A stretch of DNA of 35,758 nt from Trichosphaerium sp. ATCC 40318 (taxonomy: Eukaryota; Protista; Tubulinea): contig JALMLS010000629.1 in assembly GCA_038496445.1 (NCBI GenBank), positions 1 through 35,758 on the forward strand, in the 5' to 3' direction. Positions 6,701-31,125 of this stretch are shown here, in pieces. Within the stretch, counting starts at the first letter, position 1. Each line of letters opens with the position of its first letter. The notes under the pieces are model-generated. The model did not search any database. It worked only from the letters and a program-made list of their open reading frames with translations, and was not told the DNA's origin. A program made the position numbers and the translations under genes.

Positions 6701-6738
6701 CAAGATGGGTTTAGTAATAAAAAAAAAAGAAGTGAAAG

Positions 6739-7102
6739 TAACGCCCTTCCGTTATGAATACAAGCAATATTCATATTCATTGTCCCGTAAGCCATATTCA
6801 TTAATATTCATTCATGAATATTCATGGGCGTTTGGTGAGTCAGGATGTTGAGGAGCTTTTGGTTTGTAGCACCTAGCGATGTTCCAAATGGATAGATTCA
6901 ACAAGTTGCATTTGAAAACCGAATCGGAATAGTCAACAGAACACCAAAACCCACAAATCCAGTCAAAATCAGCCATCAAATTGCACAATTTTCGGCCTTT
7001 TACTGTGTGCATGAATAATGAATGAATTTTTTTAGTCGTGAATTTGTGAATGTAGGCTGTATTTGAATATTCAAATTATTCATCCATAACGGAAGAGCGT
7101 TA
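6739..7102. mobile_element. Non-autonomous hAT-type MITE (364 bp)
   Basis: TIRs TAACGCCCTTCCGTTATG (6739-6756) and CATAACGGAAGAGCGTTA (7085-7102) match at 17/18. Perfect 8-bp TSD AGTGAAAG at 6731-6738 and 7103-7110. Subterminal ATTCAT motifs cluster on the left and TGAAT motifs on the right. No transposase ORF. Confidence 0.9.
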
Positions 7103-7662
7103 AGTGAAAGTTCAAGCGGGTTTTCTTTGATTGCTTTATTTGCATCTCAGTGCGCTTGGCAAACACAACCAACAGTATGGAGCACTGTTGGTAAATTTGT
7201 TCTTTACAAAATAGATCAACCACACACGTGACACCACTTTTCACCTGTTTCACCTTATGCGACAAAAAGACTCATTTTTCTTACTTTTAGTCCTACTTCT
7301 ACTCGTATTTTGACGAGCACTCAAATTGTGCTACTGTTAAATTTCGACCCTTTTAGAGGTACTGATGATTGGTCTGACTTGCGTTCTATTTAGGGGAATG
7401 ATTGGCGCCTTTATGTACAACTAGGACCTGATGCCAGCGTTTCTCCAACATCACAAATCACAAGTGCTGTAAGCGCAGATATCAGATCTTTTGTTTCATT
7501 CCTTCACCTTCATCCTTTCTTTCCAAATTTACCAGGTGACATTGCTGGAACATGCATCCCAAGCGATCCTGACTTGGGTACATTCAAGAACTTCATGCAA
7601 AACGAGGACATCTCACCGCAAGCAACACGGCTCAGGTCAATGCCTTCAACAATACCAATAAA
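7103..7662 (+). pseudogene. Pseudogene copy of the secreted JAB-like protein family
   Basis: Homologous to 11546-12654 (CAWQTQPTVW; GNDWRLYVQLGPDASVSPTSQITS; FLHLHPFFPNLPGDIAGTCIPSDPDLGTFK). The start is changed to GTG, exons 2-3 are largely deleted, there are further deletions, and the MITE sits at the start. Confidence 0.88.
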
Positions 7663-11180: not shown

Positions 11181-11357
11181 TCGCTACACCAACAAATATG
11201 ATGTACAACGCTTTGATTATTGGCATTTTATGTTGTATTTCCGTTCAGCATCTTGTACTTTCACAAAGTGAGTGATGGTTGTAAACGTATTCCCTCCAAT
11301 AACCTTTCTTTAGGTTATCCTACTCCTTTCTGCGCATCTGAATACTGGTCAAAATGG

Positions 11358-11460
11358 TACTAAGCTTCCCTTCAATAAGTTTGTCTTGCTGTTTTTAAAA
11401 GTCGTTCCTGTCTCTATCAGTAAAGTTTTTATCAGATTATTGGCGTAAAGCCCAAATATT
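11358..11460 (+). repeat. Third copy of the WxxW-gene 3' flank, upstream of the intact JAB-like gene
   Basis: GTACTAAGCTTCCCTTCAATAAGTTTGTCTTGCTG...AAAAGTCGTTCCTGTCTCTATCAGTAAAGTT is also at ~6627-6697 and, inverted and more diverged, at ~430-530. Confidence 0.85.
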
Positions 11461-11545
11461 AAAAAGCATAACAATCCCACAACGTCAATACCTAAAAAGT
11501 CTTGGTTTAGTCAAAAAAAAAGCAGCTAAAAAGTTTCAATTGAAA

Positions 11546-12654
11546 ATGAAAGTTCAAGCCGCTTTTCTTCTCTTTTGCTCTTTGATTGCGCTATCTGCAT
11601 CTCAGTGCGCTTGGCAAACACAACCAACAGTATGGAACACTGTTGGTAAATTCGTTCTTTACAAAATAGATCAACCAAACACGCACGTGACACCACTTTT
11701 CACCTATTTCACCTTTTGCGACAAAAAGACTCATTTTTCTTACTTTTAGTCCTACTCTTCTCTCAACACAGTTGAGTCCTCCAGCAACACCGACATCATA
11801 CAATAACTGGAAGAGTTGGGTACTGAAGACTTTTTCATCTGCAGTTGACCCTCTTGACCAACGAGCACTTCTCGAAGTACGTAAACGCCAAACGTACAAA
11901 GAAAGTAAAACGCTAACTTGAAAAAAACAGAGACAACGTAAAATTTTCTCTGGTGCTGGATTCTCGACTCACAATTTTGACGTTATTTTGAATGGAAAAG
12001 TAGGAACAATATCAAACATCACATGCCTGGAGTATCTGTTGTACAACCTCCAAAATGAAAGATTTCCATTAGATAAGAATCCTTCTGAGTTTGGCACATG
12101 GGTTCTTCAAAAGGCACGTGTAAAAACGTAATTACTCATCATTTGACGTGGCACGTGCACCATTAAATTTCTAACCTTTTGGGCATTAAAGTTTGCGTAC
12201 TGATGATTGGTCTAACTTGCGTTCTATTTAGGGGAATGATTGGCGCCTTTATGTACAACTAGGACCTGATGCCAGTGTTTCTCCAACATCACAAATTACA
12301 AGTGCTGTAAGCGCAGATATCAGATCAGGATACACTTTTGTTTCATTCCTTCACCTTCATCCTTTCTTTCCAAACTTACCTGGTGACATCGCTGGAACAT
12401 GCATCCCAAGCGATCCTGACTTGGGTACATTCAAGAACTTCATGCAAAACGAGAACATGAAAAACGCATGGATCTGTAACGGCGTTTCAAGCTTCAAGTT
12501 CCCTATGACTCAATTGAATGTCTTCCAAATCGGCTCTTTGACTGGAGCAAATACCACCAATGGATGTCTTGATTGTTTCCCAGACGGTAACACTATAATC
12601 GATCTCACCACCAGCAATATTGCTCAGGTCGATGCCCTTCAACAAAAACAATAA
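11546..12654 (+). CDS. Secreted protein with a JAMM/MPN+ (JAB)-like metal-binding motif, ~289 aa (intact copy)
   Basis: Exons 11546-11682, 11750-11876, 11931-12113 and 12232-12654 join into one open frame using two GC-AG introns. Signal peptide MKVQAAFLLFCSLIALSASQ. Motif PSEFGTWVL ... FLHLHPFF ... CIPSDPDL. Confidence 0.8.
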
Positions 12655-12936
12655 AAATATGCTAAACCTTTTAGTTCTTTTTCGAATTAATAGTTGTTTT
12701 CTTAAGATACATTCAAGTCCGCTATGAGAAGTAGTATTGAATAAAAAAATCACGTGTTTGTAAGCTTTCTTTTTAGTGAAATGATTTTATTAACAAGGTT
12801 CGGCTTCATTAGCTCTAGTTGGTAACCTTAAAACTTGTATTCTTCATTTCGATTTTGTTATCAAAATTTATTTAAAACAGGTGTTATAGTACAGACTTTG
12901 GGTTTTTTTTTGTTTTCATATATTATTATAATACGC

Positions 12937-15550
12937 TTAAGCTTTACTATCATCGTTGTCATCTTCATGACCAGATAGATTAGGGGGTACATCCCAGTTC
13001 ATTTTTTCTACAAAAAAAGTTAACAACGACAAAAGTAAGACAAGTATTTGTTCAGGTTTCGCACCTGAAGATGTCTGTGCTGATCCAGATTCTTCATCAC
13101 CTACAGTTGTAGTAATACGCTCTTGCTTATTGATACCTGGAATAAGTCCAGCATATCTGGAAGGAGCTCTTCTGAATTCCCTCTTTGTAGTTTTTGTTCT
13201 ACAAAAAAATAAGCAAAAGACAAATATAACTGTTAACGCAAAAGCTTTGAACACAGGTTACAAACCTTACAAGAAAAAAGGCGAGAAATGGTGACACGTA
13301 CATATATTTGTTGATAGTTTTCTTGTAGGTTTTTCTACCATAAGGGTAGAGCCAACTGAGCACCCATACGAAAAATAGACTTCCAGCGCCAACAAAACAC
13401 AGTAAGTAACGCAATAGTAGTTTAACTTCCTCTGGTTGAGATTGTCCAGCCACTAGGTCAGTAATATATCCCTCACGTTCCAAAAAGAAACCGATAAGAT
13501 ATAAAGCAACAGCCTAAACGAACAGATTAGAACAAATAAAAAAGCAAGAATAAAACAAGAAAATAGTTTTAACACGTGCCTGCAAAATAGACTGGAATAC
13601 CTCCATCATGGAGAACATAAATCCCTCTGTGCGGCTTTTCAGGCGCATGTAAGCAAGATCGCATACATCAGCCATTAAAGCATTCGGAAGCGTAAAATTA
13701 ATCGCAAGTCTATTCACACTTAGGAACCACAAAAAGTGTACCAAAAATAATCATTAAGAACGCACGTGATACCAAAAGCTCCAGCAAGAGGATACGAAAG
13801 CCAACGCAACTTATCATCGTCTACACTTTAGTTAGCACAACGTTCTACGGTACAAAAAACTAGCACCCTGGATGGGGATCGAACCCACAACCTTTGGCTT
13901 AGGAGGCCAATGCTCTACCATTGAGCCACCAGGGTTTAGTGTGTTGGCAAGGTAGCAACTCTGAAGGTACCCAACGAGAGAAAGCTATTTGCTAGAGAGT
14001 TCAATCTAGATTAATCGTACCTGGTACAAAGTACAGACATATGAAAACAATCAATCCCCAAGCAGCTCCCAAATTTATCAGTAACCACTTGTCAAAGTAT
14101 CGAGTTAGTTTCATTAGTATGAAAACTGTTATAACTGTAACACCCATCATGCATACTGCCATCTATACGATTTCGTTAGGAATCCCATGTCTTGTGCTTA
14201 TATATTCCTTACGTGTGTAAAATTAACAATCTCAAAACCTAGTGCGTGAACAGCATAGAGAGGTAGAACAGAAAATGTTACTGCCTAGTCAAAAATAAGC
14301 ACTTTAAATAAATACTGTGAATAACATTACACGTACTTGTGTTAGCATACTTAGTGCATAGATTAATACCACAACAACGAAAGATCGCATGGTGAATGCG
14401 CTGCAACATGTTTTGCAGCAACCAATATCCTCGTCTTGCTATTGCAACTTGTTATTATACAAGATAGAGAAAAAACACGCCATACCAAAATTGGCAAATA
14501 GTTCGTACCTCTTCTGGTATTTTTTCCTTTGTTGTAAAGAAACATACTACACTCAATATTAACACCATACCTGCAGGTATAGCAGCCAAATACGCCTAAC
14601 ACACTATTTAATAAACAACGATTAAGGTGAGAACTTTGAGGCGGATTCTTACGTATGTCCATGTTCCATTTGCATCTAGCAAACTCAAAAGAAGCCACGA
14701 ACCAGCAACAAGGAGTAGCATGCCAACAAATGAAAATATTGATCTTGAACTACTCAGATGCAACCGAGTTTTGAAATTCTTAACATAAGAGTAAGGGCCA
14801 CAGCATTCACATAAAAAAATAGCGAAGTGTTCAGGTTTTTTTTTTGTGCTTACTTTTGTTAGCGCTGGTGCAAGTGCTGAGTGTGGTACAGATACGACTG
14901 TGAATAGAGCCATGAATGTAGATAGTAATACGAAGTAGTAAGCCACTCGTCCGACATCAGAACTAGTTGATGTGTAAGCGAAAAAAACAGTTAGGATTAA
15001 ACGAAAATCGAGGTTGGTTTTCTGATTTTTTTTTTTGGCTTAAAACGTGTTGTAGGTGATATTTGAATTATTCAGCGAGCGTACAAAGAGTTTTTGTAGA
15101 ATGCGGCAACGATTGCAAAAGGAAATAATAAACCACCGGCTATTACAAACGGACGTCGCTTGTGGCGTCCAGGTATTGCGTCAGATATCTTTTATAAAGA
15201 GTTAGGCACAAATAACCTAATTTACAAATTGGCGTACAAAGCCAATAGAGAATGAGCCTACTATTTGCACAACTTGCCCGACAGCAAGTAAAATACCCGC
15301 TAATGACGGCTCGATCTAAAATAACAATCAAAATACGCTTTTCAACGCGTTTATACTACCGGGTGCGTACCTGTGCGATATCAAGAAGAAACTGCAAGTA
15401 AAACATGTTTACTATCAAATCGGCTCCTTGTAGACCCATAGATAACGACCCGTATCCCAAAATCGTATACATGGGTAACTTGTCATTTTTTTGTGGTACT
15501 GTCCTCTTTGGATGATTCGTTGTTAGACCAGTCGCATCATTTTCAGACAT
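12937..15550 (-). CDS. MFS transporter, glycoside-pentoside-hexuronide (MFS_2 / MelB / MFSD2-like) family
   Basis: KLPMYTILGYGSLSMG...MFYLQFLLDIAQ; VVSVPHSALAPALT...RLHLSSSRSIFS; LPNALMADVCDLAYMRLKSRTEGFMFS; many hydrophobic TM exons. Confidence 0.88.
13864..13935 (-). tRNA. trnR-CCT: tRNA-Arg (anticodon CCT)
   Basis: ACCCTGG TGGCTCAATGGTAGAGCA TTGGC-CTCCTAA-GCCAA AGGTT GTGGG-TTCGATC-CCCAT CCAGGGT G folds into a full cloverleaf, with a downstream T-run Pol III terminator. Confidence 0.95.
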
Positions 15551-24508: not shown

Positions 24509-24620
24509 ATGAAAGTCCAAGTTGCTTTTCTTCTCTTCTCCTCTCTTATGGTGTTAGCTGCATATCAGTGCGCTTACCAAACACTACCGAAAATAAGAAA
24601 CAATACTGTACATCAATGAA
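24509..24620 (+). pseudogene. Exon-1 remnant of the secreted JAB-like family
   Basis: MKVQVAFLLFSSLMVLAAYQCAYQT, with upstream AAAAATAAAAAAATAAGTTGAAA matching the 5' flank of the 34172 copy. Confidence 0.8.
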
Positions 24621-27843: not shown

Positions 27844-28299
27844 TGCAAGTTATGCTTTGCTTGTTATGTTGGTACAATTTTGTTTTTGGTTAGCTAAAAC
27901 CTGGTCCAAAAATAGAGTGTGTTCCTAATTATTCTATTATTCAGAAAAAAATTCCACTTGCGTTTTTTTGCATTAAGTTATCATCTGATATCCGGCACAG
28001 CATCAATCATCAATTTGACAACAAACTTTCTTGGATAAAAGTGGCTAGGCCTCATACGCTTATTTACGCGTAGAATAGCGGACCTAGAGTATGTACAAGG
28101 TCGTTTGTGGAGTTTTACCAGAAAGGAGATTTTATAACTTCTTACACGAGTTGCTCCCTTAACATCAATGACAACAGCGACAAAGAGATTTCATATGAAT
28201 AACAAGGTAGTGAAATGAAACAATTCCGGAAAATAAGATTCCGTCTGAGTTTGTGTTGCGTACTAACCACTATGCTATACCAAACGTATTAACGCTCAC

Positions 28300-28850
28300 T
28301 CTGGAGTATGGTGGAACCTGATACGACATTTAGGCCGTGGGTTCTTCAAAAGGCACGTGTAAAAACGTAAATACAGTGTTTGGAAAACGTAGCACAATTT
28401 GACGCAGCACGTGCTCTGTAACAGTTTCGAAAGAGAAAGTCTGGTTGACATATTAGATCTAACTTACGTAATTTTAAATTGCTTTTGTACAACTAGGACC
28501 TGATGCCAGCGTTTCTCCAACATCAGTGCTGTAAGCGCAGATATCAGATCAGGATACACTTTTGTTTCATCTAACTTCACGTTTCTTTCCAAATTTACCA
28601 GGTGCCATTGCTGGAACATGTAGCCCAAGTGGTGGCGATCTGGGTGTATTCAAGATCACAAATCACAAGTGCTGTAACGCAGATATCAGATCAGGTTTCA
28701 CTTTTGACTCTATTGAAAATCGTCCAAATCGGCCATACGTACTTTTATCGGAGAAACTAATACCACCAATGGTTGTTTTGCTTGTTTTCCTGACGGAAAT
28801 CTATTGTCGACATGACTAGTAACACTAATGTCGCTACCCTTCCGCAATAG
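28300..28850 (+). pseudogene. Degenerate 3' half of the secreted JAB-like gene
   Basis: TGGGTTCTTCAAAAG|GCACGTG; GTACAACTAGGACCTGATGCCAGCGTTTCTCC; FFPNLPGAIAGTCSPS; rearranged duplication of AGTGCTGTAA-CGCAGATATCAGATCAGG. The HxH motif is broken. Confidence 0.85.
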
Positions 28851-28859
28851 ACCATTAAA

Positions 28860-29765
28860 ATGTCGGAACATGAAAAGTGCTCAACGTGGGTCAATCTAGT
28901 AAAAAACGAAATAGCTGACCTTATGTCATCAAAACGTCACTTACATGAAATAAAACAAATCAAACCGCTTCAACAGCTTCCGCCAGAGACGTTAACACAT
29001 ATTTTAACCTACTTGGATAAAAAACAGCGTATTAGAGCTTCTACAGTCTCTCATCTATTCAATAACATCATCCGCTACAATATCGGCTTCAAAAGTATTA
29101 AATTGAAATGGATACCTGATTTCTCTGTTCTCAAAGGCAGTCCTTTACTTAAAAACACTAAAATTAATGTTGTTTGGGGTTTGAAGCTATCAAAAAGTGA
29201 CATATCATGCCTTTTTGGCGTTCATACCATAGATTTTGGGTATACAAAGGTTACAGATAGAGATATCGTCTTACTGACACAAGGAGGAAAGCATAATATT
29301 CATAGTATTAGCTTGAGCTCAACAAATGTAACAGACACTTCATTGAAAGCGCTCAGTGGTGTACACACAATAGATGTTTACAACTGTGATAACATTACTG
29401 TTGAAGGGATAAAAGCTCTTAAAGATGTACATACAATAGTGCTTGGTCGAACATATGACGCATGGCTTAGACATCTTGGTAATGTACCTATAGTTCATAT
29501 TTATGTGGGTGCCTCTGTTACAGATGATGGTATTAAATGTTTGACTAAGGTCAAACATCTTGATATAAGTTTTTCTTTTATAACAGACGAAGGGTTAAAG
29601 CAGTTAGTACATCTGGAGCATCTTACACTTTTCAATTGTCCAGGAATAACAAGTGATTGTCTTCCACACTTGAAGTTTCTCAAATCAATACACATCAATG
29701 GAGAAAACACAGCAATTACAAAGGAAGCTGTTGAAGCGTTAGGCATTACATGGAATCCTAAATAA
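28860..29765 (+). CDS. F-box / leucine-rich-repeat protein (intronless, 301 aa)
   Basis: F-box LQQLPPETLTHILTYLDKKQRIRASTVSHLFN followed by LRRs such as VTDTSLKALSGVHTIDVYNCDNITVEGIKALKDVHTI. Confidence 0.9.
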   Translation: MSEHEKCSTWVNLVKNEIADLMSSKRHLHEIKQIKPLQQLPPETLTHILTYLDKKQRIRASTVSHLFNNIIRYNIGFKSIKLKWIPDFSVLKGSPLLKNTKINVVWGLKLSKSDISCLFGVHTIDFGYTKVTDRDIVLLTQGGKHNIHSISLSSTNVTDTSLKALSGVHTIDVYNCDNITVEGIKALKDVHTIVLGRTYDAWLRHLGNVPIVHIYVGASVTDDGIKCLTKVKHLDISFSFITDEGLKQLVHLEHLTLFNCPGITSDCLPHLKFLKSIHINGENTAITKEAVEALGITWNPK

Positions 29766-30346: not shown

Positions 30347-31125
30347 ATGGCACACTATAAAAAGGTACTGCATTACTAGCTAACTTTACGTAACTAAATC
30401 ACCTCAAATAGACTAGTACCGTCAAGCTTGCTGAGCACTACAGCGTTTTACACCTTCCTGTGGAGCTGCAACTTGATATTATTGATTTGGACAATGAGAT
30501 ATATCTTAAATGGCCTCTAATGTCAAAATATGCGGCGTCTACAACAAGGTTTGATAAGGACTTGAACAAAAATGGTAAGTGGTTGAAGAGAATAGACGGA
30601 GTACTGGCTTGTCAACAGTACTTCAATCATGGTCTACTGCACGGAACAAGCAAGGAGTGGCATACTGGTACTTATTCCGAGAAACTGAAGATGCAGTGCA
30701 AATACAAAGAGGGTAAACTACATGGAGAATACAAGAGGTGGTACATTGATGGCAAAGTAAGGGTGAAGTGTGAGTTTGCAAATGATAAAAGAGAAGGAGA
30801 GTACAAGGAGTGGCATGAAAACGGTAAAATAGCAGCCCTATATCATTATGTAGAGGGTAAAATAGAAGGTGAATACAAGCAATGGCATGAAAATGGCAAC
30901 TTGGCAAAGAAGTATTGTCTAATAAATGGTAAGACTGAAGGAGAATACAAACATTGGCATGAAAATGGTAAATTAAAAGAACAATGCAACTACGTTAACG
31001 GTAGAGTTCACGGTGTACTAAGATATTGGCATACTAATGGACAAATCTGGCAGCGCTGTTATTATATACAAGGTGTACAAGCAGGTGAGCACAGGTTTTG
31101 GGATGGACAAGGCATTAGATACTAA
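30347..31125 (+). CDS. F-box-like N-terminus + MORN-variant (MORN_2/YwqK-like) repeat protein
   Basis: ATG at 30347 (MAHYKK) with a phase-0 intron at 30365-30411 joins in frame to TSTVKLAEHYSVLHLPVELQLDIIDLDNEIYLKWPLMSK. It continues with about 7 24-aa repeats GK.EGEYK.WHENG.L...C.Y.NG. Confidence 0.85.

Follow-up and report, generated by a model that had tools for sequence, protein, structure and literature searches.

A spliced and expressed Trichosphaerium gene for a probably exported protein of an unannotated family within the JAB/MPN superfamily

The locus and its transcripts

The window analysed here, i.e. the whole stretch of 35,758 nucleotides from Trichosphaerium sp. ATCC 40318 (assembly GCA_038496445.1, contig JALMLS010000629.1, positions 1 to 35,758, forward strand), contains at 11546-12654 a real, expressed, four-exon eukaryotic nuclear gene whose introns 1 and 3 are of the GC-AG type. 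Its exons, all on the forward strand (11546-11682, 11750-11876, 11931-12113 and 12232-12654), join into an 870-nt CDS encoding 289 amino acids. Exon 1 holds the start codon, a signal-peptide-like leader (residues 1 to about 19) and Cys21 (in CAWQT), and exon 2 a linker followed by the beginning of a conserved DP..LL block. Exon 3 carries RQRKIF, the G..G.I..CLE block with Cys120, and PSEFGTWVL (residues 139-147) with the catalytic-type Glu141 (codon 12087-12089). Exon 4 encodes HLHP (12352-12363, residues 190-193), a GDIAGT loop, SDPD (12409-12420, residues 209-212) and AWICNG, then a lineage-specific C-terminal tail with a CxxC motif, and ends with the stop codon TAA (12652-12654). Intron 1 (11683-11749, + strand, 67 nt) and intron 3 (12114-12231, + strand, 118 nt) run from GC to AG with the donor GCACGTG; intron 2 (11877-11930, + strand, 54 nt) runs from GT to AG with the donor GTACGT.

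Transcript evidence was drawn from the contigs of four public runs (X1-X4) of three studies, placed on positions 11300-13000. All three introns were skipped by contigs in every one of the four runs: junctions 11682>11750 and 11876>11931 were recovered in all of them, and the third junction was reported as 12111>12230, which, with three ambiguous letters, is equivalent to 12113>12232 (GC..AG). Transcript depth was zero in intron 3 and in both flanks, and residual depth was found only in the bins that contain introns 1 and 2. Coverage extends from 11543, where an X1 contig begins, to 12663, and the contigs describe a monocistronic gene with a leader of its own. An earlier note on this DNA, made from the letters alone, had proposed four exons joined across GC-AG introns into about 289 residues; the transcript contigs bore out these exact exons, and their junctions retain in the transcript the Glu, HLHP and SDPD on which that note built its reading. 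It had also described the gene as hidden from the list of open reading frames, and the mechanical list indeed offers only fragments of 47-77 aa over the region, the HLHP codons falling within no listed ORF.

Two other readings of the locus were rejected. A gene model restricted to GT donors (11687 and 12120; 285 aa) is ruled out by the transcript junctions and is also contradicted by paralogue P2 (see below), in which the frame is kept only with the GC donor of intron 3. Contamination by bacterial DNA is ruled out by the three spliced introns, by the placement of the protein in a eukaryotic clade and by a GC content of 37 %, which matches that of the window.

The heptamer GCACGTG was counted 18 times in the whole window versus 2.4 copies expected, and an extra palindromic copy lies inside intron 3 (12151-12158). 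Our observations suggest that the 5' splice-site consensus of the source organism has shifted to G(C/T)ACGT. Gene finders that accept GT-AG introns only may miss genes with GCACGTG introns here, a possible reason for the absence of the protein from the sequence collection searched below.

At the 3' end of the gene, the stop codon sits within an AATAAA hexamer and the transcript contigs stop 4-9 nt downstream of the stop (12650-12663), which may reflect either an extremely short 3' UTR or trimming of the contigs at the poly(A) tail. Further downstream, positions 12903-13000 are covered by a separate X1 contig, so that a neighbouring transcribed gene begins or ends there.

Decayed copies and neighbouring features

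Judged from its sequence, the gene at 11546-12654 is the only intact copy in the window, which holds three or four decayed copies besides. The most complete of these, P2 (33107-34170, - strand), is near full-length and has the exon-intron structure of the target, with two 1-nt deletions opposite target positions 11849 and 12029. Its exons are 86-98 % identical to those of the target, and its introns 1 and 3, apart from the first eight bases and the ends, are 43 % and 31 % identical. Both GCACGTG donors are kept in P2, and the boundaries of conservation between the two copies match the RNA junctions. In-frame codons differ by 13 synonymous and 8 non-synonymous changes. Because of its two deletions, P2 is probably a young pseudogene.

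A truncated paralogue at 7105-7615 (+ strand) has GTG in place of ATG, lacks exons 2-3 and the 3' end, and bears a transposon-like insertion just upstream. This insertion of about 380 nt (within 6725-7615, + strand) has the inverted ends TAACGCCCTTCCGTTATG and CATAACGGAAGAGCGTTA and a repeated AAGTGAAAGT, and would be consistent with a MITE at the start codon of the truncated copy. A third fragment (28200-28810, + strand) is decayed by frameshifts and is devoid of the HxH motif, and a fourth (24509-24601) resembles the leader exon only.

Other features of the window include a tRNA-Arg(CCT) gene at 13863-13935 (- strand), detected with both ARAGORN and Rfam (72.7 bits). Directly after the decayed copy ending at 28810 lies an ORF without introns that encodes an F-box and LRRs (28860-29765, + strand), itself followed by a MORN-repeat ORF (30460-31125, + strand; PF07661, E 1.4e-22).

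The protein, its relatives and its predicted fold

The N-terminus of the protein, MKVQAAFLLFCSLIALSAS, is strongly hydrophobic (Kyte-Doolittle mean up to 2.78 over 11 residues), and QCAWQT comes next; the whole protein has seven cysteines and two N-x-[ST] sites. A hydrophobic leader (i.e. a strongly hydrophobic 9-mer located 12-60 residues before the first conserved Cys) was present in 87 of 112 family members, in agreement with the signal-peptide-like N-terminus read earlier, and the median length ahead of the first conserved Cys was 26 aa, bacterial and eukaryotic leaders being similar. Of 134 homologues, 111 retain Cys21. Together with Cys120 it is found in 107 members, both residues are missing from 7, and 5 members are discordant; the pair co-varies as a disulfide would. 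With the leader and this cysteine pair as support, the protein is probably exported via the secretory pathway.

The spliced translation contains the residues that the earlier note had picked out, i.e. an upstream Glu in PSEFGTWVL (Glu141) and HLHP-x15-SDPD (His190, His192, Ser209 and Asp212), with 15 residues between Pro193 and Ser209. Conservation of these residues among 134 full-length homologues is nearly complete: Glu141, His190 and His192 are found in all 134, Asp212 in 133 and Ser209 in 130. The loop inserted between HxH and Ser is conserved as well (Asp201 in 118, Gly204 in 131, Thr205 in 116 and Pro208 in 129 of the 134), and so are Asn232 and Gly233. The spacer from His192 to Ser209 is 16 residues long in the target and 16-18 in 121 of 135 family rows, which differs from the canonical H-x-H-x7-S-x2-D spacing (7 residues from the second His to Ser). 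The longer spacing put forward in the earlier note therefore holds for the target and its family but is not unique to them, as 13 residues separate HxH from Ser in the DUF4329 tip of E. coli RhsD.

In order to identify relatives, an exhaustive HMMER search with exon 4 was performed against 1.84 billion cluster representatives of a collection of 15 billion proteins (E<=1e-3). It returned 109 relatives, the best of which was 42 % identical (E 8e-16) and none of which scored better than 1e-30, so that the collection contains neither the protein of the window itself nor any sequence at least 50 % identical to it. The relatives mostly measure 220-320 aa, the part matching exon 4 is C-terminal, and their homology to the spliced target is nearly full-length. 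Conserved blocks comprise the Cys that follows the leader, DP..LL.RQR..F, G..G.I..CLE, EF.A.IL, HLHNHPF....GDIAGT.IPS..D and AWITNGF. Most relatives are proteins of about 250 aa with predicted signal peptides, distributed among Bdellovibrionota, Elusimicrobiota and others. A further clade consists of transcripts from marine eukaryotes, and the only name attached to any of the relatives is 'hypothetical protein'. No Pfam match was obtained with any target exon even at E<=10, and no NCBIfam or PADLOC match with exon 4 and six homologues.

When the profile was weighted towards the closest matches in a second search, 47 proteins were recovered from contigs of roughly 1 kb; EukProt, MMETSP and MERC are the sources of several. 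The best matches of the spliced target are eukaryotic transcripts (P0139, 39 % identity over 241 aa, E 9e-58), and the alignment between the target and its eukaryotic homologues is unbroken at the exon junctions. A maximum-likelihood tree of 131 rows placed the target within a set of 33 rows (SH-aLRT 96), all of them eukaryote-like, a label that reflects sources and contig sizes and was inferred for rows that carry no source name. The nearest bacterial rows form the group of P0008, found on bacterial contigs of about 500 kb. Given this position inside a eukaryotic clade, a horizontal or bacterial origin, if any, would be ancient and not particular to the source genome. The horizontal origin suggested earlier is thus plausible, though not as a recent event. 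The likeness to myxobacterial proteins put forward alongside it was only partly borne out: the named bacterial relatives belong mainly to Bdellovibrionota, but one of the structurally nearest ESM-Atlas clusters is mostly Myxococcota and one relative lies in a Myxococcota-labelled MAG.

We examined 14 bacterial loci of the family in reference genomes, which include Bdellovibrionales, Pseudobdellovibrionaceae, Bacteriovoracaceae, Oligoflexia and Pseudobacteriovorax, and also two Elusimicrobiota, Algicola, the Myxococcota-labelled MAG and others. Across these loci no conserved neighbour genes were found, except for synteny between the two Elusimicrobiota, and the neighbourhoods therefore give no hint of a substrate; nor were Ubl or E1/E2-like partner genes found near any of the 14. 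A tblastn search with one bacterial member against plasmid and phage collections returned no match.

Profile comparisons gave faint indications of a JAB affinity. The only Pfam families matched by more than one of 81 members were Prok-JAB (4 members), Toxin-JAB1 (3) and DUF4329 (2), all below threshold. The best JAB-clan score on any relative was 9.7e-4 (Prok-JAB), below gathering, and the best DUF4329 (PF14220) score among relatives was E 0.053, against 7.7e-38 for the RhsD tip used as positive control. A PDB sequence search with two family profiles gave insignificant matches only, the best JAB-like one being 2kks_A (E 0.36), on GW..l..H.HP. With hhalign, the family alignment A1 scored a probability of 1.8 % against E. 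coli YicR (RadC), over 22 columns around HNHP, and of 0.2 % against a shallow alignment of DUF4329 sequences gathered with the tip of RhsD. Neither value is significant, yet the motifs stood in register in both comparisons, and in the DUF4329 one E, HxH and S..D did so over 100 columns. The language-model features of exon 4 lie nearest to the DUF4329 and Toxin-JAB1 clusters (0.93).

Structures were predicted for the two nearest homologues, which share 39-43 % identity with the target and served as its proxies; the target exons were part of the family alignments used as input. The AlphaFold models reached a pLDDT of 84.5 and a pTM of 0.82 for P0001, and of 89.1 and 0.84 for P0139. They were compared by VIA-align, independently of Foldseek, with 48,161 PDB representative chains in an unbiased scan. 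The first 21 (P0001) and the first 30 (P0139) matches were all JAB/MPN, followed by cytidine deaminases and FdhD, with essentially no unrelated fold within the first 45 or so. PfJAMM1 ranked at the top for both (Z 7.8 for P0001 and 7.2 for P0139, about 110 residues aligned at 3.0-3.3 A), and the other matches included Sst2/AMSH, Cap3, a bacterial Ubl-deubiquitinase, RadC, Rpn11, BRCC36, CSN5 and the Prp8 MPN domain. Models that lack a clear match often reach Z scores of 7-8, and the case is therefore built on how uniform the list is, together with the motif. Foldseek with both models concurred on the PDB and returned JAB, MPN and DUF4329 entries among AFDB clusters and in the ESM Atlas. In the P0001 model the Glu begins a strand, helix 104-115 leads into a strand that ends with HxH, and S..D begins the next helix, a placement which we take to be the JAMM arrangement as in AfJAMM and AMSH. 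A JAB/MPN (deaminase-like) fold with a complete JAMM-type residue set is thereby largely supported for the core of the target, through models of its homologues, and the divergent JAB fold supposed in the earlier note finds support in JAMM/MPN ranking first in both Foldseek and VIA-align. The proteins constitute a new, unannotated family within the known JAB/MPN superfamily.

Known systems and candidate activity

The canonical JAMM/MPN+ proteins (Rpn11, CSN5, AMSH/Sst2, BRCC36, PfJAMM1, AfJAMM, Cap3 and Bub) are the best structural matches of the family (Z 7-8 over 110-130 residues) and carry E, HxH and S..D in the order, and on the secondary-structure elements, seen in the family model. They differ by their 7-residue spacer, against 16-18 in the family, and share no significant sequence similarity with it. 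The known JAMM/MPN+ enzymes work on ubiquitin-like tails in the cytosol or nucleus, whereas the present family has leaders and probable disulfides. RadC/YicR (PF04002) has the JAB fold in common (Z 6.7-6.8), and the HNHP of bacterial family members resembles its HNHPSG; unlike the target, however, RadC is cytoplasmic, with an N-terminal HhH/UPF0758 module and a short spacer (HNHPSG-x4-PS..D in YicR).

By language-model features and shape, the nearest named family is DUF4329/Tox-JAB-2 (PF14220), which sets E, HxH, S and D on a deaminase-like JAB fold as the target does, and whose proteins leave the producing cell, as predicted for the target family. DUF4329 domains, with E, H[ST]H, S and D, form the tips of Rhs and other polymorphic toxins, with immunity conferred by an NTF2-like protein (Zhang et al. 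2012, PMC3482391); at the control locus of E. coli, rhsD is followed downstream by ybbC. Several differences separate the two families. The PF14220 model gives no match on the target and matches only 2 of 81 relatives (best E about 0.05), and the HxH motif is H[LN]HP here versus H[ST]H in DUF4329. DUF4329 occurs as an Rhs/PAAR toxin tip with a downstream immunity gene, whereas the present family has a Sec-type leader, an N-terminal hairpin-plus-helix extension, a Cys pair and the GDIAGT.IPS loop, and stands alone, free of any delivery module or conserved neighbour.

The best explanation, which we regard as probable, is that the gene encodes an exported zinc hydrolase of the JAB/MPN fold, made of a signal peptide, an N-terminal extension and a core bearing a JAMM site. 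The signal peptide would be cleaved as the protein enters the secretory pathway, and the N-terminal extension (a beta-hairpin plus helices) would be tied to the core, probably by a Cys21-Cys120 disulfide. His190, His192 and Asp212 would hold Zn2+, Glu141 would activate a water molecule and Ser209 would stabilise the intermediate/oxyanion, with the conserved 16-residue loop (GDIAGT.IP) inserted between HxH and S..D. Zinc-dependent hydrolysis would then take place outside the cytosol, in the medium or in the lumen of a phagosome or lysosome, on an extended substrate. The bond cut would most likely be an amide, either peptide or isopeptide, and the substrate bacterial or otherwise extracellular. 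An amide bond is favoured because its cleavage is, to our knowledge, the only activity demonstrated for JAMM enzymes, and a bacterial or extracellular substrate because of the export signals and the concentration of bacterial members in predatory lineages. We infer this substrate from such indirect indications.

The same fold and metal site could instead serve a nucleic acid or another non-peptide substrate, the protein being an exported toxin or nuclease directed at competitors or prey, which we consider rather unlikely. This reading draws on DUF4329 and Toxin-JAB1 being the nearest named families by features and shape, and on RadC being among the best structural matches (Z 6.7-6.8). The Tox-JAB-1 and Tox-JAB-2 (DUF4329) clades have been argued to lack the tunnel for a Ubl tail and to be possible nucleases (Zhang et al. 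2012, PMC3482391), Aravind and colleagues having proposed cleavage of nucleic acids for these clades and for RadC, and a Salmonella T6SS study includes DUF4329 in its list of tips predicted to be RNases (PMC10469887). That toxin JABs are nucleases is, however, itself a prediction only. Moreover, the leader of the present family is of the Sec type, neither a delivery module (Rhs, PAAR or other) nor a conserved immunity-like neighbour was seen at its 14 bacterial loci, and the conserved cysteine pair would point to work in an oxidising environment and away from delivery into the cytosol of a target.

The leader was read from hydropathy, and the hydrophobic N-terminus might instead be a signal anchor or an organelle-targeting signal; the enzyme would then stay in a membrane, in the ER or in an organelle and not be released. 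This is improbable given that the leader is short, at about 19 aa, has small residues (ALS-AS-Q) at its end directly before the conserved Cys and is alike in length in bacterial and eukaryotic homologues (the median of 26 aa given above), and given that the target sequence shows neither a further hydrophobic segment nor a KDEL-like end nor an amphipathic presequence. As scaffolds without activity are frequent among eukaryotic MPN domains, and several of them appear among the structural matches, a catalytically dead binding module, i.e. a pseudo-enzyme like Rpn8 or CSN6 that keeps the MPN fold for protein recognition, was considered too. It is very hard to reconcile with the five JAMM residues, which are intact in the target and near-invariant in 134 bacterial and eukaryotic homologues, an MPN+ rather than an MPN- signature.

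If the protein is indeed an exported zinc hydrolase, a bolder version of this explanation, which we advance tentatively, would make it a member of the first JAMM-type family to work as a free Sec-secreted enzyme, present in predatory bacteria and in phagotrophic or marine protists, and cutting a bond of the envelope of bacterial prey. As to the bond itself, an isopeptide or stem-peptide link of peptidoglycan or a lipoprotein anchor is a conceivable candidate, put forward with the same reserve. Such an activity would represent a new enzyme class for bacteriolysis, acting during prey killing or digestion. Otherwise, JAB/MPN enzymes are known either from inside the cell, where they act as isopeptidases on ubiquitin-like modifiers, or as predicted tips of toxins. 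The range of the superfamily would therefore be widened by a family whose proteins stand alone, bear a leader, probably contain a disulfide bond and keep the metal-site residues intact. The family spans Bdellovibrio-like predators to protists and possesses neither a Pfam or NCBIfam model nor a named member. At about 250 aa, its proteins offer a tractable enzyme for substrate discovery, with a possible bearing on how bacteria are dismantled by predators and grazers.

One further gene arrangement was noted in the eukaryote-like clade. On a Tara Oceans contig (L018:915-2663), the family member P0085 (342 aa) adjoins a gene with a Ricin-B lectin match and weak Somatomedin-B matches, and both are uninterrupted ORFs.
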